Assembly: GCF_000150275.1 (NCBI RefSeq)
Contig: NW_002060957.1
Location: 537,968 to 601,967, forward strand
Length of the DNA stretch: 64,000 nt
Source: Trichoplax adhaerens
Taxonomy: Eukaryota; Animalia; Placozoa
Reading direction: 5' to 3'
Position numbers and translations under genes: made by a program. A model generated the notes under the pieces. The model ran no database searches. It saw only the letters and a list, made by a program, of their open reading frames with translations, and was not told the origin of the DNA. Position 1 is the stretch's first letter. Each line of letters opens with the position of its first letter. Shown here one piece after another: positions 1-23,850 of this stretch.

Positions 1-3000
1 ATGGATAATAAGGTAAGATAGTTTCTGTTGCTGATTTATCAATTCCGTAAAGCCTGCAAAGCCGGCAGTGGCTATATTGTCATATTGGCCAAATTGAGGG
101 ATATGACTTAGCTCTACAAATTTGTTCAAGGTTAACGTGCCAACGCAATGACGGCGTAAAATTTGGCGTAACGGATGCTTTAAGGGCAAGTGTCGATTAC
201 CAACAACGCAGACTGGATCCATTAAGAATTGAGTTTTTAAGAGATGTTCAACAAGTTGACTGGAGACATATGTCGCTAATTGAGCTCGAGTTTTAGCAAT
301 AGACCAGTTATCGCCATCAGCAGGGGTAAAAACTGAGGACGTTGGTGTGCTATCCATCTGAATTGCAACTGGCAGTAATTGACCATTATTGACATCGGGA
401 TTAGATACGAATATAGCAATTGGCGATGAGGTATTTTGCATTGTTCTATTATCAGTGGGTACTTCGTTGATGTCAGGTCCTTGCGGAAGTGCTCGTAATT
501 CTGGAAATTGCATTACGAAGATACGACCATCTTCCAAAGCCTAATTTATTTTATGTTTACACAATTTACACAGTTATCATCGATGACAATAATTATCCAA
601 GGAAGCTCAATTATCACTACAATAACAGTAACATGATAAATTACTTTCTTACTTGATTTACAGTATTACCAAATGTTTGCGAATTCAATTTGGACTCAAT
701 AGCATTCTTCCAACCAAAATCAGGATTTAAGAAAGGTTTTAACTCAGAAACCTTAGTACCATCGAAAATAGCATCTAAGTAAGACCAAATGTTTATTTTT
801 TGAGCATTATTAAAAGGAAATATTAAGAGATATCCATGTATGAAAGATATAGTACGGTATATCTTACAAGTATTATTCGCTCCGTGTGGCTCTATCAAGT
901 ATATTGTACAGGGTATATCAAAATGGAATTATTTATTTCTGTCTTACCTCTCTGACAAACAACTTTCCAGACAGGCTTAAAGCAGCTAGTATAAAACAAG
1001 CGCAAGCCATATCGCGAAAAACGAGCTGATAAGCACTTTCGGAAGTAGCTTGGTGTGTTGTAAGTATTTTCAACGGTAGTGCCATCCAGCCACTTACCAT
1101 ATTTTGCTCCCACATAGACACGTGAGTACCATGCTTTGAAGTACTTATTAACAAGTTTAGCTTCCGTAGGATCCGACAATATTGGTAAACGGCCATGATT
1201 ACATTTGCACTTATATTGAGCAATATGCCAGTTTGTGTAATGATATGGACGAAAGGCTTTATAGCAATGTTTACCAATTAATTTCCAACCCTGTGGACAA
1301 GCTACATGTACATACAAGATTTAATATTTTGGTTGCTTAATTCAAGTTACCATTACCGGTAATTAAGATCTGATTAGCAGATCGGGTAATTTTGGAGAAC
1401 GTGTTATTATTAACAAATTACTCATAAATAATGTGATTAAAGCTACTTCAACTTACATGATTTGAAAACTCTGGATAGCTGCAAGGGATGTAATCCTGCC
1501 AAACGCTGCTCTGCAAAGACTTTATCATCCGAGAAATTATCAATGATTAGATCACTAGGCATCGTGAGTTGATTTCCTAGTGCCTAAAGTAATGAATTTA
1601 CAAAGCATGAATAGGTTTAGCTAAGTTTGCTATCAGTAAAAATTTCTTGATTGATAGTATGCTCTTAAAATAATTACATAGTATATGATTATACTAAAAT
1701 ATAGCATCCTATCAAAGTCGTTAAATCCAATTAGCTGACTTATCCATTTTTACCAATAAATTTCGTGGTGCAGCTAATTACGATCACTGCATAAACTTAT
1801 TTTAGCATGATAAATTATAACTCAGTATTATAGCAGTATACCATTGTATGTGATTATGACTAAGTCTAATAGTATCAGAACTAATACCTATGTTGTTTCT
1901 TTATCTTTGCTTGCATTCAATTCACATTATATGATGCTTATGTACTTTATATTTCTGCATTGCATTTGTACTATCCTTCACATAGGTTGCACTCTACTGT
2001 TGATTAGTACAACAGTAACTCACATTCCCAAATTACAGTTTGAGACTCAAAATTCTTTGAGTTTACCATTAATTCATTACAGCCTGTCATCAATTGATTT
2101 CAAGATTTCAATCTTAGCTGTATACTAACTTAGATGAATTTAATCAACAAAAAAATAAAATTAAAATTAAATTAATAGCCTGATCGACACTCGAGGGCTT
2201 AGCCACACCCGAGATCATAATTCGAGGACAATTTAGTATGCTGATTATTTTGACGCATGCGTCCATTAAGCGGAAGGTATATTTCTTTTCACGATATAGT
2301 TCCGCAAATTTTCCTTTCTAGATATTATTTGCCAGCCGGACTAGAGATTTCTCCGCCTTTACCACTCCCATCTATTATTTAAAACTAATATTGAATGCGA
2401 TCTGCTTTTCTTTTTTTTTTGTCACTTAATGAACAGTAAAAAGGATACGTCCGCGCATTGCAATCGATCGCTTAAAAATTGCAGAGCTATAATCACCTGG
2501 AATGATTTCAGCTAATTATGGCACAGTTGCCATGTATAAGGAATAAAGTGATAGTATGCAATGTAGAACTGTACGTCTTAATAAAGTAACTATTGATTAT
2601 AGCTCGTATGATGAAATGGCTCACCTACCCATATGAGCTATGTAAGGTCGTAGCTGATAGCCATACTAAGTATTATTGCTATTTGAGCAATCTACTTTTA
2701 AGATTAATGACTCCTATACATTATCTAGACGAGGTATAGAATTGACGGAAAGGAAAAATTGCTAAATAGTACTTAAATTAAATTCAGAAATTAAATTAAT
2801 CAAATCATTCTTAGCAAAGTGTGCCAATATTTTTTTATTACTATATCATCATTCAAATTTTCTTGGTTATTGTACAATTCAGCTAATGACGAACGTCACT
2901 GATCGTAACTAGTTGCTTAACCTATAATTTTTTTAGAAATATTTATTGAGTAGTGCTTATTTGCTGTTGCAAAGTATGGCGATGTCTTAAAAAGTCACGC

Positions 3001-6000
3001 AAAGAGTCAAAGGAGTAGGATGCAGCTGCCGTTAATATAGACAAAATTTCATTCCTCAAGGGATGTGTCCATTTCTGTGATGCTAAAGCTTATACCTATT
3101 CTAGATGTGCAAATTGGCAAAGACTGACTAAAAATACTATTAGTCATAGGTCGCTAATTGCTGTACAAATTTTTTGAGGGATCTTATTTTACATGGAGTG
3201 ACTTTGCCAGTATGAGAATGCATGGATGCTAATAGTTTTTACTCTGTTAATCTTTCATATCAACAAAAACTTCCAATTATACTTTGCTATTAGCAATGCT
3301 GATATTGATTTGTTGATACACGTAATTATTAACTAAGCATAATATGGCCTAGTGTTGGCTTAATATTTACTTTCATAAACATAAAATATCTCAAATGCTA
3401 TGATAAGGGTGGAGGAAGTAAAAGGCGGATTCGGATATTGTCGGTGAAATTCTCAATTAAATACTTTGCACCTACTTCCCGTAGTACTGAGGCTTACATT
3501 CTTTTAGAGTACCATGTACCAAATTGAGTCTATATATATAATGCATGGTAGGAAGTGCAGTACACTCAATGAAGAAACTGTTAATGTTATACTTCATATA
3601 GTCAAGATGTTTGTATCATTATAATATCTTTACAATAAATAGTAAAATATCCTTTCGCGTTAAGTTTAACATAACTTAGATAAAACATTTGCTGCAAGTG
3701 AGGACTTGCAGTTATTGAAAGAAGACAATCAATGATTTATATAATTATTAATCTCATCTGAAATTCTGAGTCAGATACGCGAGTAAGATTAAATTTTAGA
3801 ACGCTAACGTAATTATAAGCTAGTGCGTATATATATTTACGAAGAGAATTTTTATTAAGATCAAGGTTCAGTTCTATATCAAAAGCAATACAGTACATAA
3901 AGTGACTTACCAACTGCGCATCGTAAAAGAAGGAAAACAACGCCTTGTAGTCTTCAATAACGGTAAAGTCTCGAAGAGAATTATTGCCAGTGGTAAGGAA
4001 AGTGGCCGCTAAGTTAGCACTGTCCTGTAACGTGAATTGATACGAAAAAAACCATGGATTTTCCAATGGATCACTAAATGCAACACCGAATGCTGTGCCT
4101 GGATCGGCATCCCATAGTGGTGGAATTAACACAGTTGGATCCCGCAGAGGATTATTAAAATCTGGTGTTTGACGTAATGCATATATAGTTTGACTTTGGG
4201 CTAGTTCAGTTTGACGATCCGCTAAACATGCTGCACTAACGAATTGTGGTATATCGACTGGACAAGTATGGTTACTACGAGGCAATCCAACCAATTTATG
4301 ATCCTTTTTAGATTCGATAAGTAAATCAGCTGTTTATAATTGTAGAGATAAAGAGCTATTATTAGATAAAAACACAGCAAATTGGTCTTTGATACGATAT
4401 TAACCAATTCGGAGATTGTTAACATAATATATTGTTTAAGTACCGTGATGAGTATACAACGAATACGAATATCAATATATGATTAGCGCATCTCTATATA
4501 TTCAACAGGTCTAGATAGGATAGAGCCATTTCTTCACTTTTTAATAGCATGATTGATTGTATAATCAGGGTCATTGCATAGTTACTGTAGTCACTTAAAA
4601 TGAAACAATCAATTGGTTTTGCTATAGTCTGATACTATCTTAAATTTTATATTTATAAGGGTGAAACGTCAACATTGCATAGAGTTTACTTATCTTATTT
4701 TAAGCAAGCAAACGATATTTTAACGATACTGCCGAGTTAGCTCGACGATGGATAAAATGTAATAGACTTTGCAAATTTGATGTAATGATGTTTAGATAAT
4801 TATCATACGCGCAAAGGAGAAGCCTTCTATTTTACTTCAGTCAAATTAAACGCTTAAGAAATATAGCATAAAGCATATACATATGAATTTATATAAATGA
4901 ATTTATATATAATGGCCTGTAAAATCAATAATTATTAATATAAACACTGAAAAGGACAATAAAAATTAATTAAAGTAAACGCTGAAGTTTCTAACTGACC
5001 TATTGGTCTATATTCTTGATCAGAAGAAGTCACATCACTTTTATTTTACAAGGATAATTTAAGAAATGAATTAGGTAACTAGCTCCAAGATCTATACATA
5101 TAATAATTAATCTGATAATTTGATAAATGGATTATTTAGTTAGGGACCAATCGTAGCATTGAGAATGAAATCGATTGATGATAACAAATAATTTATAGTC
5201 CATAATTTATTATAAATCGTATGTAATCATTAAGAACTTCTGTATCGCGTATATCGTCTTTAATATTATTTTTACTGATTCTGTTTAGTGTTGCAATTGA
5301 GATAAATCAAGATTGTTACAAAATTATGGAGGAGTCATGATCAACGTGAATATTTTAAGTAATGCTATGATTAAACTACAAATTATAGACAATAATCACT
5401 GCAATTAATTATTCCATTGCCGAAGCCTTGTAAGGATATTTATAAATCAAGTACTATGATTGTATAGTTGGCCAATATGGCATTCTACTTACTATTATCT
5501 TGGCTTTTGAAGAATTGGCTGTTAAAGAAGCAATCTGAATAAATTCCAACGCATAAACATGTTTCTGGTAAGATGCAGAATTCACCTTTACCACAACTCT
5601 GACGGCAAACAGCTAAATAGATTGAAATTTTAGTTTTCTTAAATTTCTTGAATTAATACACATAAGGCGTTAAAATTTAGCGGTTTGGGAATTCTAAACT
5701 GCTAGCGATGACAAAGACTACTACATGCGTAGTGATAATGGAATGCTTTAAATTATTGACTTTTATAATCAAGATTAAATCAACTATGAGTTAATATTAT
5801 CCAAATTTTTATGAATTGTTATAAATGGCTTTTCTTTATACGATTAATCAGGTATAGAATGGACTGTAATGTACTGTACATTAAATGCTCTATCATAAAG
5901 CAATAAGGTCCGCACCAGCTGTGTTCATGGCATAATAATATAAAGGTTCAGTTTTCGATTAATTTAAATTTTCTACTAGATTAATTGCTAGTATGGTAAC

Positions 6001-7175
6001 TGTTACAGAGTAAGTTAACTTTTCAAATAAGTTCACGTTTAATCCATGCTTCATATTCTATATAAGTCAAATAAATTATAGACAGCGCCATACAACTCCT
6101 TCACTATAGTTTTCTTGCACCGTTATCGTAACGTCTCTTATATTACTTTTTAATTTTACAACAACATTTTGCAACGAATCCCATAAATATTACATTGCAA
6201 CTTAATACTACAATGTCTGGCAATGCATATATAATACACTAATTTACAGCAAATCGATCAACTACAACTATCCTGTATCATATAGTCGGTACCGGATAAA
6301 GTGCAATTATGAGCTTGTGGCAATTTAAAGATCATAACGGTCACTTACAGAGTAAGATCATTACATGAGGTTAGCTAATTTATGAATAGTATCATGTCTT
6401 TGAAAAATTAACATATCGCATGCATTGCTATTCAAAGTGCATGAAATATCACTGCCTTGACATAATGACAAATATATTCTGTTTCTAAAACTACTTACGT
6501 GTAAAACAAGGATCTTCGCCATAAATTATTCCATTAGGCCTTGACCAACCTTCACAACATTGAGGATCTTTTTGATTTTTTATGCTTAAGTTCTTAATGA
6601 TGCTATTTAGTCTTTGACCATCGCTGATTTAATTTTAAATGAGTAATTAAATAATCATAGGATACATAGGATCTGGCATAGTATCAAACTTAAAACACAG
6701 AAAAGATTTTTACCTCTCCACTTCGCAAACATTGTTATTGAGAAAGCCAGCGATGATACTTGCAATAAAAGGAACATAAATTATTACTTATTCCATATAT
6801 CTAATCAAACTGTCTATTTTTCTAAGGATATTTAAAAACTGATATAGAATTAGCAACAAGTTGTTCGTACTTCATAAAATGCCCACAATTAAATAAATCA
6901 GCTGATCACAATGATGTAACTAAATTTAACAACGGGATCTATGTAGAGATATAGATAGTGTGTTTCGTGTCTCTTTAGTTTTTAAGACGTGAAATGCAGT
7001 TTTTACTCGCTTTGGCTTAAATCTCCAATTATATCACAATAGAAATAGTATGAAACACTTTTTTTGCACCCTTCTTTTTGCTGTATAGCTTCCCCTACCT
7101 TGTTAAACGCTCGTATTGTGATGAGGGTAGTGGCAAGATGGCAAAGATGGCTATAAGAGCCAATACAGACTTCAT
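1..7175 (-). CDS. Secreted lipoxygenase-family protein, paralogue A (signal peptide-EMI-EGF-LOX with inserted C-type lectin domain); 3' end runs off the window
   Basis: Hand-spliced exons with GT-AG sites and consistent phases: 7175-7099 (MKSVLALIAIFAILPLPSSQYERLT, signal peptide), 6758-6714 (..NNNVCEVE), 6623-6499 (..QCCEGWSRPNG..DPCFT), 5612-5493 (PVCRQSCGKGEFCILPETCLCVGIYSDC, EGF-like), 4329-3911 (CPVDIPQ..RQTELAQSQTIY), 1583-1457 (FSDDKVFAEQRLAGLHP, LOX motif), 1301-948 (CTLD), 774-653, 540-<1 (ALEDGRIF..LLPVAIQM..DNWSIAK..QLVEHLLKTQFLMDP..RHLPLKHP). Confidence 0.9.
948..1301 (-). other. C-type lectin-like domain exon (354 nt, phase 1-1) inside LOX paralogue A
   Basis: CPQGWKLIGKHCYK..NWHIAQYKCKCNHGRLPILSDPTEAKLV..VYVGAKYGKWLDGT..KCL..TSC..VVCQ follows the long-form CTLD pattern; AG acceptor at 1302-1303 and GT donor at 946-947. 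Confidence 0.9.
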
Positions 7176-10100
7176 TTTGAGACAACGAAATGAATCTGAT
7201 CGTTCACTGTGCAACCTAATCAATTCAACGTGAGAATTATTAAGAAGTATCAAGTTGTTTATCAGTTTTTGACAGCAATGATTAATCAGCCTTAATTATT
7301 TGTTAATAGTGCAATAGATTATGATGACAATGTGATTGACTTAAAACAATTAATAAACAATTATTCATCATTGTGCTCGACATCGCTTCAATGAACACTA
7401 TGTTAATATTGATCTAACTTTTCTACAATGCCATGCATTTTTCGATCTTATTTGATTCGCTGAAATTATTTTGCTTGACTTTTTGTAACCAAAAGACCAC
7501 TTCGAAGAAGATTTAGATGGTAAATCTTATAAGCATTAATAATATCAGGTTTAAATAATACTTTCTTAATAAATACGTAGCCTACAGGCAATACAGATGG
7601 CTAGACTGCTAGAATTTAAGATAGATAATTGAATCCATAATTTTTATATGCCTTACTTCAAGATTTCGTTTAATTATCATCACAATAAAATTATATAATA
7701 ACATTTACTATTATCAAAGATACATTTTCGGCTAGAGAATAAATAATGGAAAAGACTAGATTTAAGAAATTATTATTTATCAAAGTATGATTTACAGCCA
7801 TTAAAAATTATAAGCGCTAAAACATAACTACGTAAGATATGGTAATGCACATGGAGCATAAAAATTATAAAGAATTTTTGCCCCTATTCATAAAAATGAA
7901 TATTTAAATTAAGGGATCATTAAAGGATCCTTATATTGATAATTCATTATAATTAATTGGATTATTAGTTTTGTTTCACTAATTAATGAATGCTTTGCTA
8001 AATCACAATTGTTACGGTAATAATGAAAAAACCGTTCGGGGGCAACTAAATGCGGCAGTTAATATTTAAAATAAGATGCATCGTCTATAAACATATTTTC
8101 GAAATTTGAAGGTTAGGATCCATTTATTTTCCTAAACTTAAAACAATAGAAACTACGACATTAAGTCACTAGGAATGATTCTCTTGGAGCAAGCCAATGT
8201 GCTATCGTTTCCAAAATACTTCTGATAGTAAAAATACCTTAGTACGACTTTTTACAAACGATTCTAGAGGTATAAATTGGGGTATACTTTGGAGTGGGTA
8301 TAGTCTGGGCTGTTACACAGGTTCTCATTTTTTAGCATCCTTTTATAATTGGTGATATTATAGTCATATCATGGTTTTATATTTTAGCTAAATATTTACA
8401 GCGGTTAATTGAAGCTATAAAAGTATAGCTAAAGTAAAATTGTTGCAAGAATACAGATAATTTTATTAATTTAATCTAGCTTTCATTTTATGATCTATTC
8501 TTAGTGTATGGTACTGTTTTGCATAAACGTTGTATAATGGAATAGTATCATAATAATTAGTATCACTACTACGTAGTTACTAATAAAGGAAACATTAGAG
8601 TCGTCTAATGTTTTAGAGGAGAGCGAAATCATTGTACAGTAGATTATAGTTGACTTCTATTACCCCAAAATACTACCATATTAGTTGCGCTGCCAACAAT
8701 TTCTAATAAATATTCAAACTTAACAAGATTTATTCATTTGCTAGATTTTTCGTTCTAATCAATAATTTTCAGAGCTCGATCAATTTAGCTAGCGCTAGAA
8801 CCAGTTATGTAGATAAATAAACGTGATTGGTGCTTTTAAGACTCTTGAGATAATATTTTGTAATAGATATCCTAAGATGATCTTATTCTATAATAGCCTA
8901 GTAGTGACTAAGTCATGGTGTTATGATATATGAGCAGTATTAACTAAATATCATTCTGATACCATTACCTACTATATTTGCTTTTAAATATTAGTGGGCT
9001 AATAATTATTTTATCAGGTAATTCATTCTGATAGAAAGACATTAAAGAGATTTCGTATAATGCTATTTATACAATGTAAAATTATAGATTATTGCATGTA
9101 ACGATAGAAATAGATCTTAAAACGCAAAGCTTAATGGCATGAAGTTGGTTGATAATTTATTCCCAAATCTAATAAACTTTCATTCAATCCGTCATACCTT
9201 TACTTTAATCACACTCTATTTTCTAGTTTTAATCACTCTGAATCATTTTTTAAAGCCTCCTTTATTTCTTTATGCTTATGCTGAAATATATCTGAAGATA
9301 TTGTTACTGCTGAAATACTTTTTCTGTCCACGTAAAACGAAAGGCAGTAATTTTAATTAAACAATATCACAGATATCAATCTAATCTACGAGACGCTATA
9401 AAAATATGAAGCTGTGAAGCTTACTCAAAATATGCTTTGACATCGAAGTAATATAACGCTAATTCTATATCTATCAATACATCTATCGATCATCACAAAA
9501 CTTGACTAAACTACATTGCTTTTCCTAAAAGTTCCAATAATAGCTTATTTTTGAGTTTGTAGCGCCAAAATTTTCATCATTTATTTCTAAGAGAAAAAAT
9601 TAAAAAGAAGTATCAATGCGTTGTATACAATAAAATATTTGCTTTTACCATGTTGTACTAGGACTTTCGTTAGCTAATTTAAAGGTTAAAGGTTAATATT
9701 TCATAATGCTTGTAGTATTTTCATAATGATTTCAGATACTGATATGGAAAGACTGGTAAATTTCTTTTTTACATACCTTTCCCTATAATACGTATGATTA
9801 GCTCATTTGGCGATGATAGTAAATAAAGCATAAAATAAAAGAATTATTGTATTTTATTCTTATATAGCTCTGATTCGATAAATGATATCATAGTGAATAC
9901 AGATAAATAATGAGCCTAGGATGGGTTTTGTAATTTTTAATTGAAGTATTGAGGCCAAAAAGTCAATATATCTAATGTTGACTAAGAGATATATGGCTAC
10001 TAATTGTTTCTACGAGACAATGAAAATATTTCTTAAGTGCAAAGCTACATAAAATTGTCTGCGTATTCTGCCTTTAGTATTATATATTCAATATGAATGT

Positions 10101-11040
10101 GCTATGGGAATTGACCTTGGCCTCTAAACGATAAGCTCAAGGACAATATTATAAAATTGTGAACGACAAACTGATATGCTATGTACGGTACCGAGATCTC
10201 GGAACAGTAGGAGTTAATTAGGTGCTTGCTTTGCTAGCCCCCATCAGGCAATGCTCGCTTGTTTTGTTCTTAATTCTATGACGGGATATTGACTAGATTG
10301 CTAGAAGAATTCTTTAATTTAATAGTCACTGAAAGTAGTTTGTTTACATAAAATTCAATAAATATTCTTGAGAGATTAAATGTTATACCAGGAGATCCTA
10401 CGTTAATGATTAATTAATTAATTAATTAATTATGAAAAAAATAAAGTTGTTGCTAAGTGTCACTAACCAGCTTCGTGACAAAGATAACGTAAAACAAATC
10501 TCTAAATTACTCTAGTCTCCAGGATTCAGTATCCCTAAACTACCTCACAAGAATTTAGACGCCTTTGCTTCTACGTTAAAACAACTATATAAGTCTTCTT
10601 TTATTCAACTATCTGCCGAGCTTAACCCTTCGGCAGCAGCTATCATGTAGGAGTCATAACGGTTCATGAAATTTAGCTCATATTGGATAGCTAAATTAAT
10701 ACAGAAATTATTCATAATTTTGGACATGTACCGAACGATTCTAGATAATTAGACTACAGTATGTCCACACGCAGAATTATTTATAGTATCACCTATAATT
10801 GAATATCTTCAGGATATTCATCATAAGCGTTACAAGACATAACGCTATAATCAATTACTATTGGTTACCTTATAAGAACTTTTACTACAATGCAGCATAA
10901 TTTACTGTAACAAATAATAACTACCGCAGTTCTTACTGTAAGTCATCATTAGTTATCTCCATGTATGAATGTTAAACACTAAATTTAGTCATATACTTTT
11001 CACAGTGGCTCGTACCGTAACACTAAGATATTACGTTTAA

Positions 11041-11340
11041 ACCATGTGTCACAATTTTACTTCTGCGACAAGGTAACGTACAGTAAAAGTCTATAAGTAG
11101 CTACTGACTTAAACGCCCTTCTACCTAACTTTAAACACACACAGCAAAATACTGTAAAGATAAAACTTTTATTAGCAAAGACACATCTACAACTTTTTAC
11201 TACCCCACTCAACTCAAATGTTCCCGTTTATATAGGAAAAGTCTAATTTGTAAACAACAGTATTATTATTATACCTTACTAGGAGAAACATCTCGAAATG
11301 AGATGTTCGTTACATAGCTTTTCTATCAGTAAACATTTTG
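11041..11340. repeat. Dispersed repeat (~290 bp), copy 1; inverted copy at ~57950-58238
   Basis: Shared blocks such as TAAAGATAAAACTTTTATTAGCA, CTCAACTCAAATGTTCCCGTTTATATAGGA, TATTATTATTATACCTTACTAGGAGA and TAGCTTTTCTATCAGTAAA are found as reverse complements in the Apaf-1-like intron. Confidence 0.85.
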
Positions 11341-14300
11341 TATTTCTTACTCTTACTTAATCTTAATCTAAGCACGTAGGTTGTCTAATTCAACTATCAT
11401 CAACTAGAACTTGAATCATCTTACTGCTATTTATCACACAATAACAATCAATATCAAATATGTAATGAACTATCACAAACAACATCCACGTTAAGGCATT
11501 ACTTATCTTACCTAGAACTACAAATATGGATATTCTCCGTACTAGCTACTACTGTACTTATTAAACTATCCCAATGACAAGGCAACACCGTAACACCATG
11601 TAAATATTAGTGTTAACAAGGCATCTCGAGTAGTTGTATCAATTTGCAAGATACTAATATCATTTCTAGATGAATGCCCAATATCTTTTTACATCTTAAT
11701 AGTTGATGGATATCATAAAATTGAACGAAAGCCTTTCACATTATTACCAGTGCCATAGATAAATTCCAATTCTCTATTAATTACTATAAATTCACTTCTA
11801 GACTTAATTATTTTCAAGCGCAGGCGACTTATGAGTTTCTGACATAAAATTCTAAACTTTTAAAAGATTAATAGTTTGAGAATATCGACAGTACGAAAAG
11901 TATTTCTTGATATTTCGGAAATAAGCTAATAGAACACCTGTTGCTAAGTAGTACAGTTATTCTTTTAAAATAATTGCTAATAAATTGCTTGATGTAATCT
12001 CTTATTTCAAACGTATATGTTACGGTCAGTGTATAAGCTATTATTGCCATGGAACGATTCATAACTCGACAAACTCCGATATAATTTGCTACTAGGTAGC
12101 AAATAAATGGGCTGCATGAATAACCCGTTCGTAATACGTACTTGTTACGGTTCATCATTACCGTAAATAAAAAAAGAAATATTTATTCATATTTTTTCTA
12201 AAGTAGAGTTGCGATATGTTAAGTCGTTAATGGATTTCCATTAATGAATGTGTGATAAAGATTGCCACACTTGATTAATGAGTTATTAAGTAACATGTCT
12301 AGTTGATTTGTTAACTGGAGTAAGAGTGGTAAACACTCAATATTAATTTACATATATCTATTCTATACTGACTGTCATAAATATATGTTATACAAAATCA
12401 AGTATATTGTAAATAGAATTATGCTGATAGAAAATGGCATAGGTATATAAGAGCGTGCCTTTAATCATAGAAGGAGTTCTCTTATTACATTGCCTAGTAA
12501 TATATGTTATCGTTCGAATAAAGAGGATTTATGAAGTTATCCGGATATACACACTGCTGAATAAGGTCTTATACTAAGCTGGTCGAGTTAGTGAAGCTTA
12601 TTAGCAACGGTATATTACGGTAGAGCGGTTACGTTAGGAATAAAATTAGTTACTTGTACCACAAACGACGTTACGACAGAACTATATATTGATAGTTTTT
12701 CTATTACTCGTAAGTAAACAATTGAGCAGCCTAAAATTTGTCATGTAACAACTGTAAATTGCTAATAATAAGACACAACCAAGATTGGGAGAGAAAAGAG
12801 TTCGAAATAGCCTGTTATTAATTCCGCGTCCGTTAGCTCAAGGAATTTAGCTTTTTTAATGAATAACTTAACATGGCAATGGAAGAGGCGAAAAGAATAT
12901 ATGCTTCTGTTTATTCATTTGCATATATAGCTATTTTTACCTATGTTCTTGTATTTATACAGCTCGTCAGGATTTCTATTTAGTATCTACTAGGATAAAT
13001 ACATAGAATTTGCTCTTTAACTTCTTAAGTTCACTTTACTATTCGTGGATTCGACTGCCACTTGATTGAAAGTTGTAAAGAATTTTGTTGATGTATTTAC
13101 TGGGGCCTGATTGTGGCACAAAATATACCATTGTTTCGATGCTTAATAAGCAGCAGTCCTATTATTTCACTGTAGATCAATGTCTATATTCGACCAGAGA
13201 ATTAATGATAATTTACTTATATAATTAATCAAAATGGGGCAAAAATTTTTTCATGCACCGACACTGATGTCATGCAATAGAGCCTACAAATATGATGTAC
13301 TGGTATGACAGTATTCATTTTAGGAACTAGTTAGAGGTGATTGCATCCGCAAACAACTTCAGGCACTGAAATTCCACGGCCCATATACAGTATTGAATAG
13401 TTACTGGCCCTTAAAGGATGATACAGTAAATGATAACTTATAATTACGGCTTAAAAGATATGCACCACTTGCAGGAGGTATTAACTGAAATATCAGCTTA
13501 CGCCCCTCTAGAATCATACAGGCACGTAATTTTCTCAGCATCTATCATTATCATTATTGATTTATTTATCTTGGCTAACTTTATGAATGGCTGAGTAAAG
13601 ATTTTAAGTTTCGTCCTTTTGGACAACATTACTTGAAACAGCATTTTGTAGGACTATTTCTGGTAGTCATAAAAGTACACAGAATCCTGAATATTATATG
13701 CTCTTTATATTTTATTTCATGCGAATTATCTTACTCAGTTAGGACAGGTATATATTTGTTTATGATATAGGTAAGGTTAGAGTCTGAATTTTTATTTAGG
13801 TACGTAGTATTCTCCATTATACTGCGGTATATAATGATTATTTTGCTAAATGAAATATCTAAAATTGACGGTAACATTCTCGTATAAGCGAGTAGCAAAC
13901 AAGTAAATTACAAGGATAAAGTTTTACTAAATATAATTTAATAAAACTAATGTCCTCAAGCTGCTATAAGAAAGAAATGGATACCTTTATTAGTATTAGA
14001 ATATATGGCATTAAAACTAGTCTATTTAATTGTCTCTCACTTTTAAACTAACGACAATTACCAGGTTTAGGACACTAAAGCAGATTTTGTCATTCCGATT
14101 GTGACTAGGAGGAGGTAAAACTAGTAAGATCCATGCTTTGACGTTTTAAGATAAAGATATCCATGACAAATCATATGTTATCGTATGAATTAAATTTTAC
14201 CTTAGGAAAATCTAACATCTTAGCATAATAAATTATTAAATTAGGGATAACGTCAATACGATATGGTGCTAAGTAACTGTCCATATAGGCAATTAAAATA

Positions 14301-15034
14301 TATGCTTGTATTGCGATACAAGGACCACAAGTTAATAAAATTACGAATTCGATGAGAGGAAGGAAAAAATTTTACGGCGGACTAATTATACTTGAAGAAA
14401 TGATGGCATTTACCAGTTAATACAGAAAGTGAAATTTTCTACGAAATAATTGGATGCGCACTATTCATACCCAACTAAATTTTGCAGTAATAGCGAATGA
14501 ATAAAGAAAGAAACTCAATAAATATGAGCGTATCTGTTATAATATTAAGTACGGTAATTTTGCGTAATATATTAGAATTAGATCGATATGATGTTAATAA
14601 TAAATCCGTGTCTGGAGCAAAAAGGATGCCATACGGCAATTTAATAATTATTCTGTAATATCATAGTGAACTGGTAGATTACATCGCAAACGTAGAGCTA
14701 TAATGCATAATACACTATCATTCTAAATTAGATAGTCTATTTTAACCTTATATGATTTGATAATTTATGCTTAACTTAGATAGTTCCTACATTTTAATGA
14801 AGTAAATTAGCGAAGGTAGATAGTTAGTCTTATTACAAGAGTGGAAGCTTGTAGTTTTTTCTGAAATATCGCGGTCTATATTCTGTTACTTATTCATAAA
14901 GTAATAAGATGTAGCTTTAACTGATATGTGAAAATAGCAACAATGCTACTGCTGATTTTAAATATGCCCGTACTATCGATGTTACAATGTAAAATTATGT
15001 TATATTGCTGTTAGAATCCATATCTGAAATGGTC

Positions 15035-18000
15035 TTAACTACTAATGCTATTTGGTACATTTTTTGGATGAAGGTACTTATAGCTCAAATGGCCATTGGC
15101 AACATTGGCGTTATTTCTAGCCACTAAATTAGCTTGAATGGTATCAATGCGAGCCTTGAATTCGAAGACCAACTCTTCAGCATCGCTATCTGCCATGCTA
15201 GCTGCATAATCGAACAAACTATCGAAATGTAATGAAGCCAAGTTGAAGCCAACTTCTACATGAGTCTAGGATAGAAGAAATAAATATTAGAGATAAATTT
15301 GTTATTGCGAAATATTAGTACTGGAAAGCTAATGAGGTAAAGTAAATGATGACCCTATAGTACTTTAGCTGTGGTTAATTATTATTATCTTGTTCAAGAA
15401 TGTAGAGTGTTACTAATTATAATTGTAATTATCCTGAAAAATTTAGTATCAAACCTTGTACTATTGTTTACAGTTAAACTCATAAAATTTGAAATTTTGC
15501 CGATATTGTTTGTCTACTAACGTCGCAGATTCTAATGATAAATGCTTATTGGATAATTATACTTACTAAAGATTGGGTCTTGGTTGGGAATTTTATTGGG
15601 TCAAATCCTGTTACACCGTCCACGTTATAAATTTTACCAGGCATATTAGGTAGAAAAGTGCCATATTCAATGACTGGAAAATTAACTGCTGCATGTTGGC
15701 AAGAAGAAGACCAAACGAATTTATGCAATACATCGATGACTTGAGCTTTTGTAGTGAAAGATTGAGGGAAGTCGCGTAACTACATATTTAAGCGAGACGA
15801 TACCAGTTTAAGTAAGTAAGTAATGATAACGAATTATAGTTTTTTTGTAGTCTCTGAATACTATTAACATCAGTTCATATATTGCAATAAAGTTTAGCTT
15901 TAAAATACATAGCTCTAGGTGACTCAAAATGACACTGGATACAGTTATTACTCACTTTGCCTTTGCCTGAGTCTGGAGTACCTGTAGCACCTAAAGCAAT
16001 TTCGTTTGCCCAACGTTGCATTTCATGATCGGCAACTACAGTTGCATCATCTACATAATATCTGAGAAAATTAATTTGTAAAATTAGAATCGAAGGTTAT
16101 TGTATTTGTTCCTCCAGGTCAGTTGTCTATTAAACTTACAGGTTAACGTAATCTCGTATAAAATCACCAATAGCTTTATATAATTCTAGCCCATCATCTC
16201 GGTAAGGAAAGAAAGGAAGTGCTTGCTTATCCAATAATCCAGATTTCTAACTCATGATAAATATAATATATAGCGACTTAAATTAGTATATACTACAAAA
16301 CGTTGTACTCAATTAATGGTAGACTGTTCAGTGATTCGATAATACAAATTTTTATATCATTATAAACTAGATATTGCTGCTTAAGTGCCCAGAAGGTGAT
16401 GCTTTTAACCAAAGCTAGCAGAATCGTTGTCTTACTAAGCAATTACTACAAGCAGCTTCAGTTATAATTCTATTGCTTAATATAACAGTTAGGTCAATTT
16501 TTTTCGGTAGTGAACGATAAGTACTTCAATATTTTGCGTTTAATATATTGTAGCACAAAATTTATTCAACTCGTTAAAAAATAGTTAAGCTCAAACCTTT
16601 AATCGATAATTAGGGTCGTGATTATTAAATGACCAGGTATTAAATCCATTATTTATAACGTCATTTTGTCCCTTGAATCCAACAGTCAGGATTCTGTCCA
16701 CTCTACCACCGAGTGGTATTAAGCTTAATTCGCCAACTTTATTCGTAGTCAATGTTCCTCTACAATGTTGGCGAATAAGTTGGCCCACAGGATGTGTTAT
16801 TGGTATATTTCGTTTACCTGATACACATAAGGGATCGTTGACTAGATGAGTATGCAATAAATGTTCTAATAATTCAGCGGTAGTAAAAGCGGACATTTGA
16901 ACTAAAATTTTAGCAATGGTCCAGTTATCGCCATCATCTGGTGTATATACTGGCGAATTTTGAGTACTATTGATCTGAATAGCAACAGGCAAAAATTCTC
17001 CATGGTTGACGTCCGGATTTGAAACAAAGATTGCAATTGGCGACATTAAAGTCATCATAGTTCTACCATCATTTGGTATTTCTTCAAAATCGGGGCTGGT
17101 TCTTATTCCTCTAAGCTCAGGAAATTCTGATACGTATACCCTACCATCTTGCACAGCCTTAAAAGTATAAAAAACAGCAAATTATAATTATGCGCAAGCA
17201 TACAATTGAGATTTAGATAGAACTGATAGGGAAATACAGTAATCTTTATTTACTTACATCAACAAAGGTATTACTATAATAAGGCGAATTAGAAGCCAGT
17301 TTGGATCGAATTGCTTTCTTCCACTTGAATGATGGGTTTAGAACGGATTTTAAGGTTGAGATCTTAACGCCATTTAAATTAGCAGCTACAGATGATACAT
17401 AAAAATATTAATAGAATCCAATCATGCTATCAAAAATCATTGAGAAATAGCATGATACCAAAATAGCCCTTATTTTTATATCAAGTAGTCACCTTTTTGA
17501 CATAATATTTTTCTCAAAGGCCAGAAACAGAAACTGTATCTTAATTTTAAGCCAGATTGAGTAAATCCAGCTGTTAAACATCGACGGAATGCACTAGGTT
17601 GATTGCTGGCACCCACAACTGGAGTGCCATCGGGCCATGTACCGTTACCGCCGTCAACATAAACGGGGACAGAAGCAAATTTATATCGCTTATTTACTTT
17701 AGCGGCTTCCTGTGAATCCGATAGATCTGCTAGATGGCTGATATGGCATTCGCAGACATGTTTTGCAGCATTAAAATTGCTGTAAGGGTATCCACGGAAC
17801 ATTCTATAGCAATTCTCTCCAATTAACGTCCATCCTCGTGGACAAGCTAAAGAAGAACAGACATTGCTTTAAAATTGATCGTGCTCAAGGCTAACTGAAA
17901 ATAATTGAAAGGCTAATATTATTGTAGTAAGGCCCAAACTATACTTTAAATGAAAATTCTACTAACTACCAATACTTTGGTTAATGTAAAGAATGTTTTT

Positions 18001-21000
18001 GGTTATATATCAGGCAGTATACCGAATCTATACAGTCACCTAAAGAAGATCAAGAAAGCATGATACTTACGCTTGCCGATAACGCGCTTCACGGGGAATG
18101 GATTTAATCCGGCAATTTGCTGCTCTGCAAATACACGATCATCTTGCCACATATCAATAATTAAATCATTGATATTAGTTGGGACATTTCCTTGGTCCTA
18201 CGTATGTGAGAAAAGCATTACAAGAATTGATTCTCAATCGATAGAAAACATTACAATCATTGTCTATTATCAAGTGAGAATGTCGTAAAGGTTCCCCATT
18301 TTAATACTGATATTAGAGATTACTTCTATACACTTACCACATGAAACATATAGAAGAAGAAAAATAATTCTCGCCAATCTGAAATACTAGAAAATTCCCG
18401 GACAGAATTATTTCCTAGACTTAAGTAAGTCTGGACTAATTGTCCGTTGGTTCCCAATATAAAAAAGTATTGATTTAACCAAGGTGCTTCAAAGGGGTCA
18501 CTGGCTCCAACACCAAAAGCCGTTGGTGGATCGATGTCCCATAATGGAGTAAGTAATACATCTAAATCACGACCAGAGTCATTAAAATTAGGCGTAGTAC
18601 GGATTTTATAAATAACACGATTAGTAGCTAATTCTGTTTGGCGCTGGATGGTACAGTTGGGGCTAGCATTTTGCGGCAATGCTACTGGACAGGTTTGGCT
18701 AGTCGATCTTTTGCTATGTTGTTCAGCATCGCGATCGAATAAATTATTGTCAAAATTTTCTTCACTTCCAACGTCGATATCCGCTGCCCAACGTGTGAAT
18801 TGATCAAAAGGCGATCCTAAAGTTTCAATAAATTCAAGGAAAATTTTGCAGAATGAAAAGTTGATGCAATCCGTCTTGAATTATGATACTCTCTATCTGA
18901 TCTAAAAATCATGATCTCTGCATCTATATCCGTTCGTTATAGTAAATGAAATATGACTGATATCGCCGCAATACTTAAATTAACAATTACTGACTTTTGT
19001 ACCTAACGTAGTCTAAATTTAGATAAGATGAATTATGGAAGCATCATACTAGAAAATAGTAGAGATGGAATATGAATTAAGAGTGCAAGTTACTTTTTTT
19101 TCCATTCGTCGCATTATAAGTTGTTGATTGACATCCTCTATAGCCCAAGACGCATAAGCACTTATCTGGCTTATAACAAGATTCCTTATTGCCACAGGGT
19201 ACCTTGCAAGTTGCTAATTATAGAATAAATGAATCAATAAATGACTAATGAATTGAGCACATTATTTTAGAATCATTAAGCAAGTAAATTTCAAGCTATT
19301 GAGATTTTTGATCGCAAAACTGAGACTAGAAATAGTCCTACGCAAACAAAAATGGTGGAAAGGATTGAATCATGAGTGTTAAAAGTTGAGGTAGATTATA
19401 TTACAGTTACGCTTAATTAGACGAAATTACACATAAATCATCTATTTTATCTTAAATACCATAGCTTACAGGAAAAAGGAGATCGCAATCAATACGATAC
19501 AGAAATTTAACGCTGCACAAGATTGTCTATTTTAAGGCTACGCTTTTGATTGGTAATTGAATTTTAGAAGTACAAAAATTTTGCACTATTGAGACTGAAA
19601 TTCACTGCAGAGTTTAGTCATCTATTTTCTTCCGGATTATTGTACAAAGTGTGAGCACCGCATACTATTGCACTTACGAATAAAGCAAGGTGCATTTCCT
19701 TCTCGATTACCGCCGGCCCTTGTCCAGCCATCGCAGCATCGAAATTTTGTAGCCCTAGCAATATAGTCTTCCTCATCAAAGAATCGGTCGCTGATGCTAT
19801 GGTAAGCTCGCCTAAAATAAATTTTCAAAGTATGACATTTATATTACTTTCTATTATTAATTCAATGCCAATCAATATCACGAATTTCGCGTATTATTTC
19901 CCACTCCACTAAAAGTAATTATAAATACTTGGCAAACTGTAAGCTTAAATAAATCTCGATATTAGGATTGAGCTCAGCCTATATGTACTATAGAATGGAA
20001 GTTTAAACTCTGAGATATTATCGAAGGTATTCAATACTAAATCATATCTGTGTCATGATAAAGGTAAGAATAAGTTGGCCAATTTTTCACAGGATCCTAT
20101 TACAACATACGATTTGACTTTTGCTAAGTGTAATATTATAATTAGCATGTTACTCACACTGTAACGCTGTAATATTTATTTCTTCTTAGTCTAAACTGTA
20201 ATTATTGTAGTGGTTATCTACCTAAAACTGAACTTACTGCTTGAGCACATTTCAGTAAATGATCACTTTTGTTTCACTAATGATCAATACTACCACAGTT
20301 ATTACCGCATTCATTGCTACCGCTTATCGATGTCTAATCTTAATTATACCGGAAGCTGTCCAGTTTACTACTGCCATTAAAACTAGATACATCTAACTTT
20401 GCAAAATCTGCGATCCAATTTACTGATTAACCTGCCAATAGAATGTATTTTAATCATGATTGATTAAATACTAGAACAAGATATTTTACAATATCATTAG
20501 TACTATACCACTGTGCAATCAACTCTTGCGACAATTTTAGCCCCTTTTCTATACAGATAAAAGTAAATAATTTGGAATGGTGGTTTACCAGTTTGACGCC
20601 CATGCTAATAAATTTAGTTTAGCCAGCATACAATGGAATTATTTACATGGATAGTGTAATACGTTAAATTTTAGGTAATGTATGCACATATTTAGTGAAT
20701 TTTATGGCATTTACCGGTATTAATGCATGTTGTAAACTAATTACGATCGATAATAATCGATACCAGCGCGGTATAATATCCGCATATGCTAGTTATAATT
20801 AGAATTATCCATTAAATTGTTTTCAAATTTTAATAATACTAAGATTAATAACAGTAAAATTATAATTATTAACTTTTATACGAAGAAAATCAAGAAGAAC
20901 ATTAAAGCTAACATCAAAATGGTTGATAGCTTCAGTTGAAAACTTACTTGGCAGTATAAGAGCAGACATTGACATTGACGGAACCACTACTGTTAAGACA

Positions 21001-23850
21001 ATGAATAAATAGATGCTATTATTTAACATTTCCATCATCTATAAATAATAACTTTGTCTTCTATTTGTAATAGACCAATTTTAATTGATAAACTATAAAT
21101 GAAAAATTATTCTTTGCGTCACCATTGAATTATTAAAATAGGCTATTTTATGATGAAGTTGAGAAAACAGTCGCTTATAAAAGCCTAACAAATCTGATAA
21201 CAGTCACCAATTTTACAAATATACAGTATTCACAAAAAGATCGTTAGTAATTAACATTCAATATCATTATTTATTGCTAATGTGGAGCATTAGTAATCAA
21301 ATAGATAAATTCTACAGTATTGCTGTTATTTTGAACGGTGGTAATTACTTATTCCGGAAAGCAGAAATTATTTGGCCGATGTAACTAGTTATTTGCAAGT
21401 ATAAGTGGCGTTTTAGCTATTATTACTGAATAAATCCAGAATTTTCTTCTATGATGTGTAAATTAATTGGGCCAATGTAACAAGTTATTTGAAAATATTT
21501 ACTGTGATTTCACTCTTATGATAATATACTCGTAGGATCACTATTTTTCTTCCATGACAGGTAAATTAATTGGCCAATTGAACTGGTTATTATCCGCAAT
21601 CCATATTACTTTTCAAATTATCGTGTTTTCCATTTTATTTTGCTGATACGTCCTTAATTAGCGGTTTTAAAATTTCAGCTGTATCATGACGCTGCAGCAA
21701 TTAAGTGAACAATAATACACGGATTTAAGCTATGCTTTAATAATTTTAACCACTTTCTACAGTTGGCTTTAGTAGTAGTTTTAGAGTTCATTCCACGTAC
21801 TTGACGACTGATCTTGATTTGATTCATTACAATTTAATGTGTTCTAGAATAATACTTATGTATCATTTACTACAAATTGATGATAGTTATTATTTCGAAG
21901 TATTGTTTGAAATAAATTATGAATAATGATCTTGTATCATTTAAAGTAATTGGATGATAACTGTTGTTCCAAATTGTTTTTTGAACGCGTTATACAATAA
22001 TAATTATGAATTATTGAAATCATAAATGCAATGACTGCTGTTTCCAAATGTTGTTTATGCACATTAGGGAAAAATGAAGATAACGGTATAGACAATCATA
22101 ACATTCTATGCATAATCTAAATTTAGTTATAATTATTCTCGCATCGCGGTAAATGATGGAGTAAGTTAAAAATAATCTTAATAGATTAATATGAATCGAC
22201 AATATATGGAAATATTATGTTATGAATAAATAATGTTAATTTGTTTCCATGATTTATAAAGGTGTTGTGATTTCAGCTAATTATAGTATTATTGTGTTTT
22301 GAAAATGTAATATCGATATGTAGTAATCACTATGTAGTAGAGAATAATCGTTTATGCTTAATAAAGCAACTGTGGATGATAGGGGTTAAAACCATTCATT
22401 AAAGAAATTAAAGGAATTCTAGATGACAGGGTTAAAACCTTTCATTACAGAAAATTTTATTGTTATAACTTATGCTCGATGTAATTTCAATTTAAAATAA
22501 TGTACTGGTAATTCGATGATGTCTAGAAATACCTTGATGCGATGTAATAAATCCAAATCAATAGCACTGATTCAAGCTAAGGATAGTAAAAATCTCTGAA
22601 CTAATAAATTAAGTAAACTTTTCGACTATGTCTAATTTGCACAAAATAATTTGCATTAAAAGTTTTAATTGCGATCGATAGATAAAACATTTATCTTTCG
22701 ATTTCTCTTCTCTGGTCGGAGTTATTACTTTGAGCTTTTGATCATTACATAAGATCAATTAGTTCACAATTAGAATGTGATATTTATTATCATTAATTAC
22801 TCATAAGAATTGGTTTTAATCACAAATGATCTCAATTAAAAAAAATTTACTGGTCTATATTAGTCCAGTTTGACATGATTGTCATTTGCAAAAAAGTTAT
22901 CTAGTAGTGATTTAAAATCTTATTTATTGCCTTCAGACTCAAGTTGGCTTTGATCAAGTACGATACCTATCTAATCAGACTTGATATAATCTGGCTTTTT
23001 AGACATTAAATGATATTAATTGGATGCATTTTACTATCATTTCCTTATCTGGTATGAAATATCCAATTACAACTTCTACTATATTTAGTGGGCAAATAAA
23101 AAAATGGTAGTTCCGTATGCTATCCATATCAATACCTAGCTATAACTTCTACCTTTTTAGCTATCAATAAAGCTATTTATATTCGATTTATTCACTGGCC
23201 TAATAAAAAATAGGATAATTCTGTATGCTATCCTTGACAGTAGCTAAATATAAATTAGATGATTATTATATAATCGAGAGGCCAATTATACGCTGCTTTG
23301 ATTTCATTTTGAAGACTACCTCATTTCTGTTTTATTGTCTGCTTTTACCAACAAAATTATCTTTTAGCCATAATATAGTCATCTTTCAATAAAAGTTACT
23401 GTTATTTGGAACTGTGTTAACTTTAAAATTACCTTTTGTGTAAAAATTGGTTAGTTAAGAAGGTATAAAAATAGGATAGCATCTTAAATGCTATCGCTAG
23501 TTGTTATCATCGTGATAATTTCTAATCAAACTTTCATCCAGATTCGAGTTCTTTTTATTTGCTGTTATTTTCCTACTAATTTCTGCTTTCGTTATAATAT
23601 TAAGGTGCAATTTTAAAATAAACTAGACCACAATTTTGCTTTGGTGTTAACCACAGCTACATGTATTAAGTGATTAGACTAAAGACGCTTCTAAAATGGG
23701 GCTATTAACCTGGCTACAACAAATAAGAACAATCATACTAATATAACCAGATCGATCTTTCTAAGTAGACAATTTGATACTGTATAGTAGACTTTACCTT
23801 TGGGAAGCAGTGGCTAAGGCTACTAAGAGTAGAAAGTATCCAAGATTCAT
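15035..23850 (-). CDS. Secreted lipoxygenase, paralogue B (signal peptide-EMI-EGF-LOX with inserted C-type lectin domain), complete
   Basis: Exons: 23850-23798 (MNLGYFLLLVALATASQ), 20989-20948 (SGSVNVNVCSYTA), small EMI exons at ~20431-20398 and 20195-20158 (less certain), 19811-19678 (FRCCDGW..APCF), 19213-19094 (EGF-like CKVPCGNKESCYKPDKCLCVLGYRGC), 18816-18338, 18197-18071 (WQDDRVFAEQQIAGLNP), 17846-17493 (CTLD), 17385-17258, 17157-16597 (ELLEHLLHTHLVNDP), 16246-16140 (FPYRDDG), 16061-15956 (YYVDD..V..DHEMQRW), 15779-15567 (SCQHAAVNF), 15265-15035 (..YLHPKNVPNSISS-stop). Confidence 0.92.
17493..17846 (-). other. C-type lectin-like domain exon (354 nt, phase 1-1) inside LOX paralogue B
   Basis: CPRGWTLIGENCYR..NFNAAKHVCECHISHLADLSDSQE..VYVDGGNGTWPDGT..RCL..FC..ILCQ; same length, phase and insertion point as in paralogue A. 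Confidence 0.9.
21365..21595. repeat. Three degenerate direct repeats (~100-bp spacing) in intron 1 of LOX B
   Basis: An AAATTAATTGGCCAATGTAAC.AGTTATT-like core occurs at ~21365, ~21460 and ~21563. Confidence 0.55.

Follow-up and report, generated by a model that had tools for sequence, protein, structure and literature searches.

A C-type lectin-like exon within the catalytic domain of Trichoplax adhaerens lipoxygenase genes, at a loop that carries FN2 modules in corals

Two lipoxygenase genes and their inserted exons

A 64,000-nucleotide stretch of the genome of the placozoan Trichoplax adhaerens (contig NW_002060957.1, positions 537,968 to 601,967; here called the window) carries two lipoxygenase (LOX) genes on its minus strand, gene 1 and gene 2. 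An initial annotation of the window had proposed that in both paralogues a 354-nucleotide exon (948-1301 and 17493-17846) encoding a C-type lectin-like domain (CTLD) lies inside the LOX catalytic domain, and this was borne out by Pfam, by a profile search of the PDB and by the flanking LOX motifs. Both exons are stop-free in the frame of their neighbors, are bounded by AG and GT in phase 1-1, and are placed between an exon with the motif DDxVFAEQxxAGLxP and downstream exons that carry LNPxF.W, DGR(I/V) and the His helix. The exact conservation of length despite divergence also held, with 354 nucleotides in each gene and a protein identity of 47%. Throughout, database searches, family scans and fold predictions were conducted exon by exon, and the joined gene 2 model was used to determine phases, to locate motifs and to make local comparisons.

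The exon structure of gene 2 was defined with RNA contigs from four runs of four studies, aligned to positions 15020 to 21010. One of the four runs is recorded as RNA and the other three are presumed to be RNA; spliced forms were observed in all four. Joints were found at every gene 2 intron, all GT..AG on the minus strand, and the two junctions predicted around the CTLD exon (18071->17846 and 17493->17385) were present exactly, as joints 17846->18071 and 17385->17493, in contigs of the four runs. Single contigs of 2,764 and 2,813 nucleotides span the whole gene 2 mRNA with the CTLD exon included. Splicing in frame on both sides of the insert, as first proposed for both genes, was thus confirmed for gene 2 by RNA joints in four runs, and for gene 1 it is supported by splice sites and phases. 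The initial annotation had named transcripts that never include the CTLD exon as a refuting case, and all contig forms of gene 2 include it. No exon-skipping joint 17385->18071 was present in the contigs of the four runs, a type of assembly that drops rare variants.

The exons of gene 2 are as follows.

23798..23850, minus strand: exon 1, coding part, with the ATG and signal peptide (MNLGYFLLLVALATASQ), the 5' untranslated region lying further upstream (RNA contig ends, GT donor)
20948..20989, minus strand: exon 2, with NVCSY, the first part of the EMI-like module (joint 19810->20947 in four runs; AG/GT)
19678..19811, minus strand: exon 3, EMI-like module with CCDGW (RNA joints, gene model)
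19094..19213, minus strand: exon 4, Cys-rich, where the EMI-like module ends in EGF-like sequence (RNA joints)
18338..18816, minus strand: exon 5, linker and N-terminal LOX part (CPVALPQ...), no PLAT (RNA joints)
18071..18197, minus strand: exon 6, DDRVFAEQQIAGLNPFPVKRVIGK, ending in phase 1 (RNA joints, gene model)
17493..17846, minus strand: exon 7, the inserted C-type lectin-like domain, residues 319-436, phase 1-1 (Pfam, RNA joints, PDB profile)
17258..17385, minus strand: exon 8, where LOX resumes (NGVKISTLKSVLNPSFKW) (RNA joints, gene model, alignment)
16597..17157, minus strand: exon 9, LOX core with DGRVY, SPIAIF and the helix EHLLHTH (H578, H583) (Pfam, PDB)
16140..16246, minus strand: exon 10 (LPFFPYRDDG) (RNA joints, gene model)
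15956..16061, minus strand: exon 11 (RNA joints, gene model)
15567..15779, minus strand: exon 12, QHAAVNF, with iron ligands H766 and N770 (Pfam, RNA joints)
15035..15265, minus strand: exon 13, C terminus ...PNSISS and stop, with the 3' untranslated region below 15035 (RNA joints)

At approximately position 20990 the contigs depart from the genome, and their loose ends match 23800-23829 exactly; the first coding exon was therefore placed at 23798-23850, approximately 2.8 kb upstream of exon 2. A start at the ATG at 21038 was rejected, since the RNA contigs splice 20989/20990 to 23798-23850, giving a different signal peptide. Just upstream of exon 2, the region 20823-21038 holds an in-frame ATG with a signal-like peptide and may represent an alternative start.

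Joined, the 13 RNA-defined exons give an open frame of 884 codons (884 amino acids). The protein comprises a signal peptide (1-17), a Cys-rich EMI-like module (approximately 25-104; NVCSY...CCDGW followed by an EGF-like tail), an acidic linker and LOX sequence from approximately residue 158, with exon 5 aligning to the PCEVSLPQ region of cnidarian LOXs. The CTLD occupies the loop between AGLNP..RVIGK and NGVK..LNPSFKW. All side-chain iron ligands are present (H578, H583, H766 and N770), and the free C terminus is at Ser884. The Pfam Lipoxygenase family (PF00305) was matched by exon 9 (16597-17157) with 51 bits against a cut-off of 23.6 and by exon 12 (15567-15779) with 21.5 bits; the best PDB match of exon 9 was the coral 11R-LOX, 3VF1 (E = 1.5e-22). 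No Pfam or PDB match to PLAT (PF01477) was obtained with any of the N-terminal exons of gene 2. Scanned singly, the gene 2 exons gave no match to EMI (PF07546) and only weak EGF-type Pfam matches (E = 0.04), while the Nematostella homologue P0151 scored 18.2 bits with EMI, below the cut-off of 25. The head is therefore assigned only tentatively as EMI-like, from its Cys and CCxGW pattern. With a signal peptide, a Cys-rich head and no PLAT, the gene 2 protein appears to be built for secretion.

Gene 1 has the same layout as gene 2: EMI-like exons, the N-terminal LOX exon, the AGLHP exon, the CTLD and then the following exons. It overruns the start of the window, its last exons lying up to 1,347 bases before position 1 (L007). 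The exons identified within the window are as follows.

Near 6499-6570, minus strand: further CCEGW exon (tblastn with the gene 2 model, splice sites)
5493..5612, minus strand: Cys-rich EMI/EGF-like exon (tblastn with the gene 2 model, splice sites)
3911..4329, minus strand: N-terminal LOX exon (CPVDIPQ...) (sequence comparison)
1457..1583, minus strand: exon with DDKVFAEQRLAGLHP, ending in phase 1 (sequence, splice sites)
948..1301, minus strand: inserted C-type lectin-like exon, phase 1-1 (translation, Pfam, splice sites)
653..774, minus strand: exon where LOX resumes (LNPDFGW) (sequence, splice sites)
1..540, minus strand, continuing past position 1 as far as 63 bases outside the window: LOX core exon (DGRIF; EHLLKTQ) (sequence)

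The gene 1 junctions 1457->1301 and 948->774 are supported by sequence. As assembled, the core of gene 1 departs from that of gene 2: the sequence EHLLKTQ has Gln where the second iron-binding His would stand, fusion of the core exon to its downstream neighbor goes with the loss of approximately 21 codons and an intron, and a frame shift lies near positions 30-45 of the window, beside a short A run, such that translation of the gene as assembled stops in the next exon. No canonical intron was found that would restore the frame without deleting more of the core, and rescue by splicing was therefore rejected. When read in the shifted frame, the three exons past the break are still open, and QHAAVNY and a Val at the C terminus are among the conserved sequence; for this reason the lesion would be either recent or an assembly error. 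Gene 1 is probably catalytically dead or a pseudogene. The expectation that both paralogues oxidize lipids is thus contradicted, for gene 1 as assembled, by its Gln at the second iron position and its broken frame.

Identity, conservation and age of the insert

Both 354-nucleotide exons encode domains of 117 to 118 residues that start with CPxGWxLIGxxCY. With Pfam Lectin_C (PF00059), the gene 1 exon scored 22.9 bits (cut-off, 22.6) and the gene 2 exon 17.4 bits. As these scores were marginal, a profile of three copies of the domain (gene 1, gene 2 and the metagenomic copy L009 described below) was searched against the PDB, giving 79 chains at E ≤ 0.1. All 60 of the chains listed were C-type lectin-like, the best being the PLA2 receptor (5.8e-10), and further matches included NKG2D, aggrecan, snaclecs and type II antifreeze proteins. 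In a language-model feature search (Atlas), Lectin_C clusters accounted for 28 of 30 matches to the insert. By their pattern, the cysteines would be compatible with the disulfide pairs C0-C0', C1-C4 and C2-C3.

The motifs of classical calcium-dependent sugar binding were sought at the positions that EPN/QPD and WND presumably occupy in CTLD alignments. Where EPN/QPD would be expected, gene 2 has QPS, gene 1 has TPS and L009 has QPD, and a WND before the C3 cysteine was found in none of the three copies. Many CTLDs bind proteins, lipids or minerals, and since the classical Ca2+/sugar motifs are missing here, something other than a sugar could be the ligand. The insert is therefore best described as a CTLD for which the motifs do not support calcium-dependent sugar binding: the fold assignment of the initial annotation stands by profile, whereas the lectin activity that it implied is at most putative.

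The top match to the LOX core was a 159-residue fragment from metagenome contigs. Two ENA contigs, L009 and L010 (1,977 and 1,698 bases, 33% GC, assembled from different samples), carry the same AT-rich, eukaryotic LOX-CTLD gene, which looks orthologous and is 64% identical to gene 2 in the LOX core. The source is presumably an unsampled placozoan-like animal. The CTLD exon of L009 is at the same place, 48 to 50% identical to the window copies and two codons longer. The ligands of the His helix are kept in this gene, whose contigs end before the remaining ligands. In L009 both presumed cysteine positions of the C2-C3 disulfide have been lost together, a paired loss that fits a real CTLD fold.

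Ratios of nonsynonymous to synonymous substitution (dN/dS) were 0.15 to 0.36 for the insert and 0.16 to 0.18 for the LOX core, rough values given that synonymous sites were saturated. The CTLD insert is under purifying selection. In a small tree the three placozoan-type sequences formed a clade (100/100), within which gene 2 and L009 grouped together (83/78). From this grouping, the insertion predates both the duplication of gene 1 and gene 2 and the split from L009.

A genome-wide scan of the 105.6-Mb assembly (1,414 contigs) located four LOX loci, the two in the window, 16 kb apart, and two on another contig (G000:C1412:1231449-1236711 and G000:C1412:7604265-7609034; L016-L019). The latter two match the PLAT region of mammalian ALOX15B, have no lectin-like exon and look like conventional PLAT-LOX genes without the insert. 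A source for the CTLD exon was also sought in the same genome, where, besides the LOX copies themselves, a single fragment of 26 residues matched. No full-length placozoan LOX was returned by an exon query of a representative library, by two cnidarian full-length queries or by a profile of Nematostella and window-exon sequences. The window itself is AT-rich (approximately 30% GC); in its most GC-rich part, a 533-codon open frame (35498-37099, minus strand) encodes a Gln/Pro/Ser-rich low-complexity protein.

The insertion loop in cnidarian relatives

The LOX core exon matched cnidarian proteins first, from Nematostella, Exaiptasia, Acropora, Montipora, Actinia and Sanderia. All cnidarian relatives inspected have signal-peptide-like starts and no PLAT, and most end in Ser or Thr (P0286 in Glu). 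Two relatives of this secreted LOX clade carry extra domains in the precomputed Pfam assignments, P0293 (an EGF domain) and P0284 (PF26431; 1,140 amino acids). Alignment placed the placozoan insert between ..NP...(K/R).V(T/I)G and ..G(V/L).W.EL...LNP.F.W, and at the homologous site, between H269 and E270, the Nematostella gene has a phase-1 intron. A symmetric 1-1 exon in a phase-1 intron is the classical footprint of exon shuffling. Since the CTLD exon is of this type and occupies an ancestral phase-1 intron, it arrived by that route. The exon before the insert aligns to residues 96-127 of the Cyanothece LOX 5MED, and its counterpart in the human enzymes 15-LOX-2 and 5-LOX lies around residues 265-273; the insertion region is presumably a peripheral, length-variable part of the LOX catalytic domain.

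The spacing between AGxNP and SPIA was surveyed in 96 fetched LOX proteins carrying both flanking motifs. It was 70 to 99 residues, the basal length, in 82 of the 96; FN2 insertions were present in 13, all from corals, and in gene 2, where the CTLD is inserted, the spacing was 208 residues. Overall, the loop was found to hold from 0 to approximately 330 extra residues, with one to several FN2 units in the corals. In Montipora P0013 the FN2 domain is at the same place as the placozoan CTLD (AlphaFold2, run on P0013 as a single sequence, gave a predicted local distance difference test score, pLDDT, of 32), and the stony-coral secreted LOX proteins concerned are P0013, P0207-P0210 and P0218-P0229. 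There are annotated isoforms that lack FN2; in Montipora, such isoforms and their FN2-bearing counterparts share 99.8% identity apart from the insert. At the Desmophyllum pertusum locus, the one gene checked in this respect, the FN2 domains of the same loop are each encoded on their own exon.

L015:3539-3697: Desmophyllum pertusum FN2 exon, phase 1-1
L015:7472-7624: Desmophyllum pertusum FN2 exon, phase 1-1

The capture of FN2 in stony corals is independent of the capture of the CTLD in placozoans, and, because the two kinds of module occupy the same loop, the loop after AGxNP is a recurrent exon-shuffling hot spot, or module port. The initial annotation had described the known LOX fusions as end-to-end joins and was aware of no LOX with an internal lectin insertion. 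For database sequences the first of these does not hold: internal insertions are already public, as uncharacterized coral FN2 sequences. No paper describing the LOX-CTLD architecture or the coral FN2 insertions was found in the literature searched. A coral skeletal-matrix proteome reportedly holds eight lipoxygenases (bioRxiv 10.64898/2026.03.24.713908), which fits an extracellular location of coral LOXs.

Interpretation and closest known systems

The data are best accounted for, and in our judgment probably so, by gene 1 and gene 2 belonging to a secreted, PLAT-less LOX family of cnidarians and placozoans, with an exon-shuffled CTLD that in the placozoan genes would serve an extracellular, targeted dioxygenase. 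The CTLD exon entered an ancestral phase-1 intron of this family. The gene 2 protein would be exported and act outside the cell as a dioxygenase of polyunsaturated fatty acids, with the CTLD, and probably also the EMI head, replacing PLAT as the docking device and holding the enzyme on an extracellular ligand such as matrix, mucus or the surface of prey or microbes. Gene 1 would be a long-retained, fast-evolving copy, now catalytically impaired by the change of His to Gln and frame-broken as assembled. The extracellular lipid-oxidizing enzyme of the initial annotation thus survives in its secretion features, the signal peptide and the EMI-like head, and fails as an enzyme for gene 1 as assembled. 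The targeting to microbial, algal or dying-cell surfaces, for immunity or digestion, that it put forward is speculative. For gene 2, catalytic competence, secretion and targeting by the CTLD are predictions from sequence, and to our knowledge no member of the secreted LOX clade has been assayed.

Several observations weigh against this interpretation. The CTLDs of the window genes lack the calcium/sugar site formed by EPN/QPD plus WND, so that lectin-type binding is putative at most, and the AlphaFold2 model of the CTLD exon, built on an alignment of three sequences, reached a pLDDT of only 41. The EMI assignment draws on the Cys/CCxGW pattern and on a sub-threshold match in a homologue. The C-terminal residue is Ser, and most members of the clade end in Ser or Thr, where LOXs usually have Ile. 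Finally, a minor exon-skipping isoform is compatible with the contig data, and annotated coral isoforms do skip FN2 exons.

This last point bears on a different explanation, in which the CTLD exon is a cassette switch that yields lectin-bearing and plain LOX isoforms, the biology lying in the switch. Skipping a symmetric 1-1 exon preserves the frame, and the near-identical Montipora isoforms with and without FN2 exons provide an annotated precedent; against it, the four RNA assemblies contained only the inclusion form, with the proviso on rare variants given above, and we consider such a switch unlikely. The C-terminal residue and the state of gene 1 would in turn be explained if these proteins were pseudoenzymes, extracellular lipid-binding or scaffold proteins on a LOX fold, whose function is carried by the CTLD and EMI modules. 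Gene 1, with its Gln at the second iron position, its loss of approximately 21 residues and its broken frame, is in keeping with this, as are the Ser/Thr C terminus of the clade and the altered ligand motifs of some relatives, such as QHSAVGI in P0012. However, the side-chain ligands are kept in gene 2, in L009/L010 (for the His helix only) and in most cnidarian relatives, and the LOX core is under purifying selection (dN/dS, approximately 0.17). The fifth iron ligand of LOXs is a main-chain carboxylate, so the last side chain can vary. A general loss of catalysis seems to us about as improbable as the isoform switch.

Less probable still is that the insert is mainly regulatory, a lid or allosteric module that acts on catalysis from beside the substrate entrance, and not a targeting device. 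Its location within the catalytic domain, not at an end, and the acceptance of two unrelated modules at the same loop would suit such a role, but CTLD and FN2 are both classic extracellular binding modules, and a loop that tolerates 0 to approximately 330 extra residues argues against a precise steric function. That the CTLD exon comes from a nested or neighboring gene, or is a dead exon outside the LOX protein, has only the prior in its favor that internal domain insertions are rare. Single RNA contigs in the four runs join the exon in frame to LOX exons on both sides, and it is conserved at the same place in both the paralogue and a divergent relative, its dN/dS being far lower than 1. For gene 2 this explanation was rejected on the inclusion of the exon in the LOX message, and overall we give it almost no credence.

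Beyond the preferred reading of a secreted LOX with a captured docking module, the loop after AGxNP could be an ancient, intron-marked docking port of a cnidarian-placozoan family of extracellular LOXs, into which lineages plug different exon-shuffled modules (a CTLD in placozoans, FN2 arrays in corals), splicing them in or out, and so aim lipid peroxidation outside the cell. We put this forward tentatively, as a proposal that is rather doubtful at present. If it were true, animals without conventional immune or digestive organs would be able to aim lipid peroxidation at prey membranes, microbes or matrix.

Lipoxygenases have been treated as intracellular, PLAT-anchored enzymes whose known fusions are end to end. 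Gene 2 would represent a different design, that of a secreted enzyme whose head is extracellular and whose binding module grows out of the catalytic domain itself, and points to an uncharacterized extracellular LOX biology in early-branching animals. One intron-marked loop with different modules in a placozoan and in corals offers a clean natural case of exon shuffling into an enzyme core, and constructs with and without the insert would provide a means to ask how lipid oxidation is aimed outside cells. Compared with known LOXs, LOX-CTLD combines domains in a new way and falls within a broader pattern, so far undescribed, that corals share; it is not a new class of enzyme, and what it does is a prediction.

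Among known systems, the closest to gene 2 in the LOX core are the cnidarian secreted PLAT-less LOXs (Nematostella XP_048584002.1, which is P0151, and Acropora P0007), automatically named "5-lipoxygenase-like" and the best matches at 36 to 42% identity. They have in common with gene 2 the signal peptide, the lack of PLAT, the ..C.V.LPQ.. motif, a C-terminal Ser/Thr and the phase-1 intron at the insertion site, and P0151 also has the EMI-like head; they lack the CTLD, with an AGxNP-SPIA spacing of 70 to 99 residues compared to 208 in gene 2. The coral FN2-LOXs (Montipora XP_068716666.1, which is P0013, and those of Porites, Oculina and Desmophyllum) carry a binding module at the same loop, after ..NP...R.VT, but the module is FN2, in one to several copies and annotated as alternatively spliced, where gene 2 has a CTLD.

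The nearest solved structures are the coral 11R-LOX (3VF1) and 8R-LOX/AOS-LOX (2FNQ, 3FG1 and 3DY5), with E values of 1.5e-22 and 1.9e-17. Their iron-ligand motifs are those of gene 2, whereas they are intracellular, have an N-terminal PLAT and no internal module, and in AOS-LOX are fused end to end. Conventional animal LOXs likewise have an N-terminal PLAT, in place of which gene 2 has a signal peptide and Cys-rich head. The Cyanothece mini-LOX 5MED is PLAT-less like gene 2 and, among PDB entries, gave the best match with exon 6, which precedes the insert, the insertion point mapping just after its residue 127; it differs in being bacterial, with neither signal peptide, EMI head nor insert. 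With C-type lectin-like domains at large (PF00059), the insert has in common the CPxGW..CY start, a WIGL-like strand, W.DG and paired cysteines, and it differs from them in being compact (117 amino acids), in lacking EPN/QPD plus WND in the window genes and in being embedded inside an enzyme domain.

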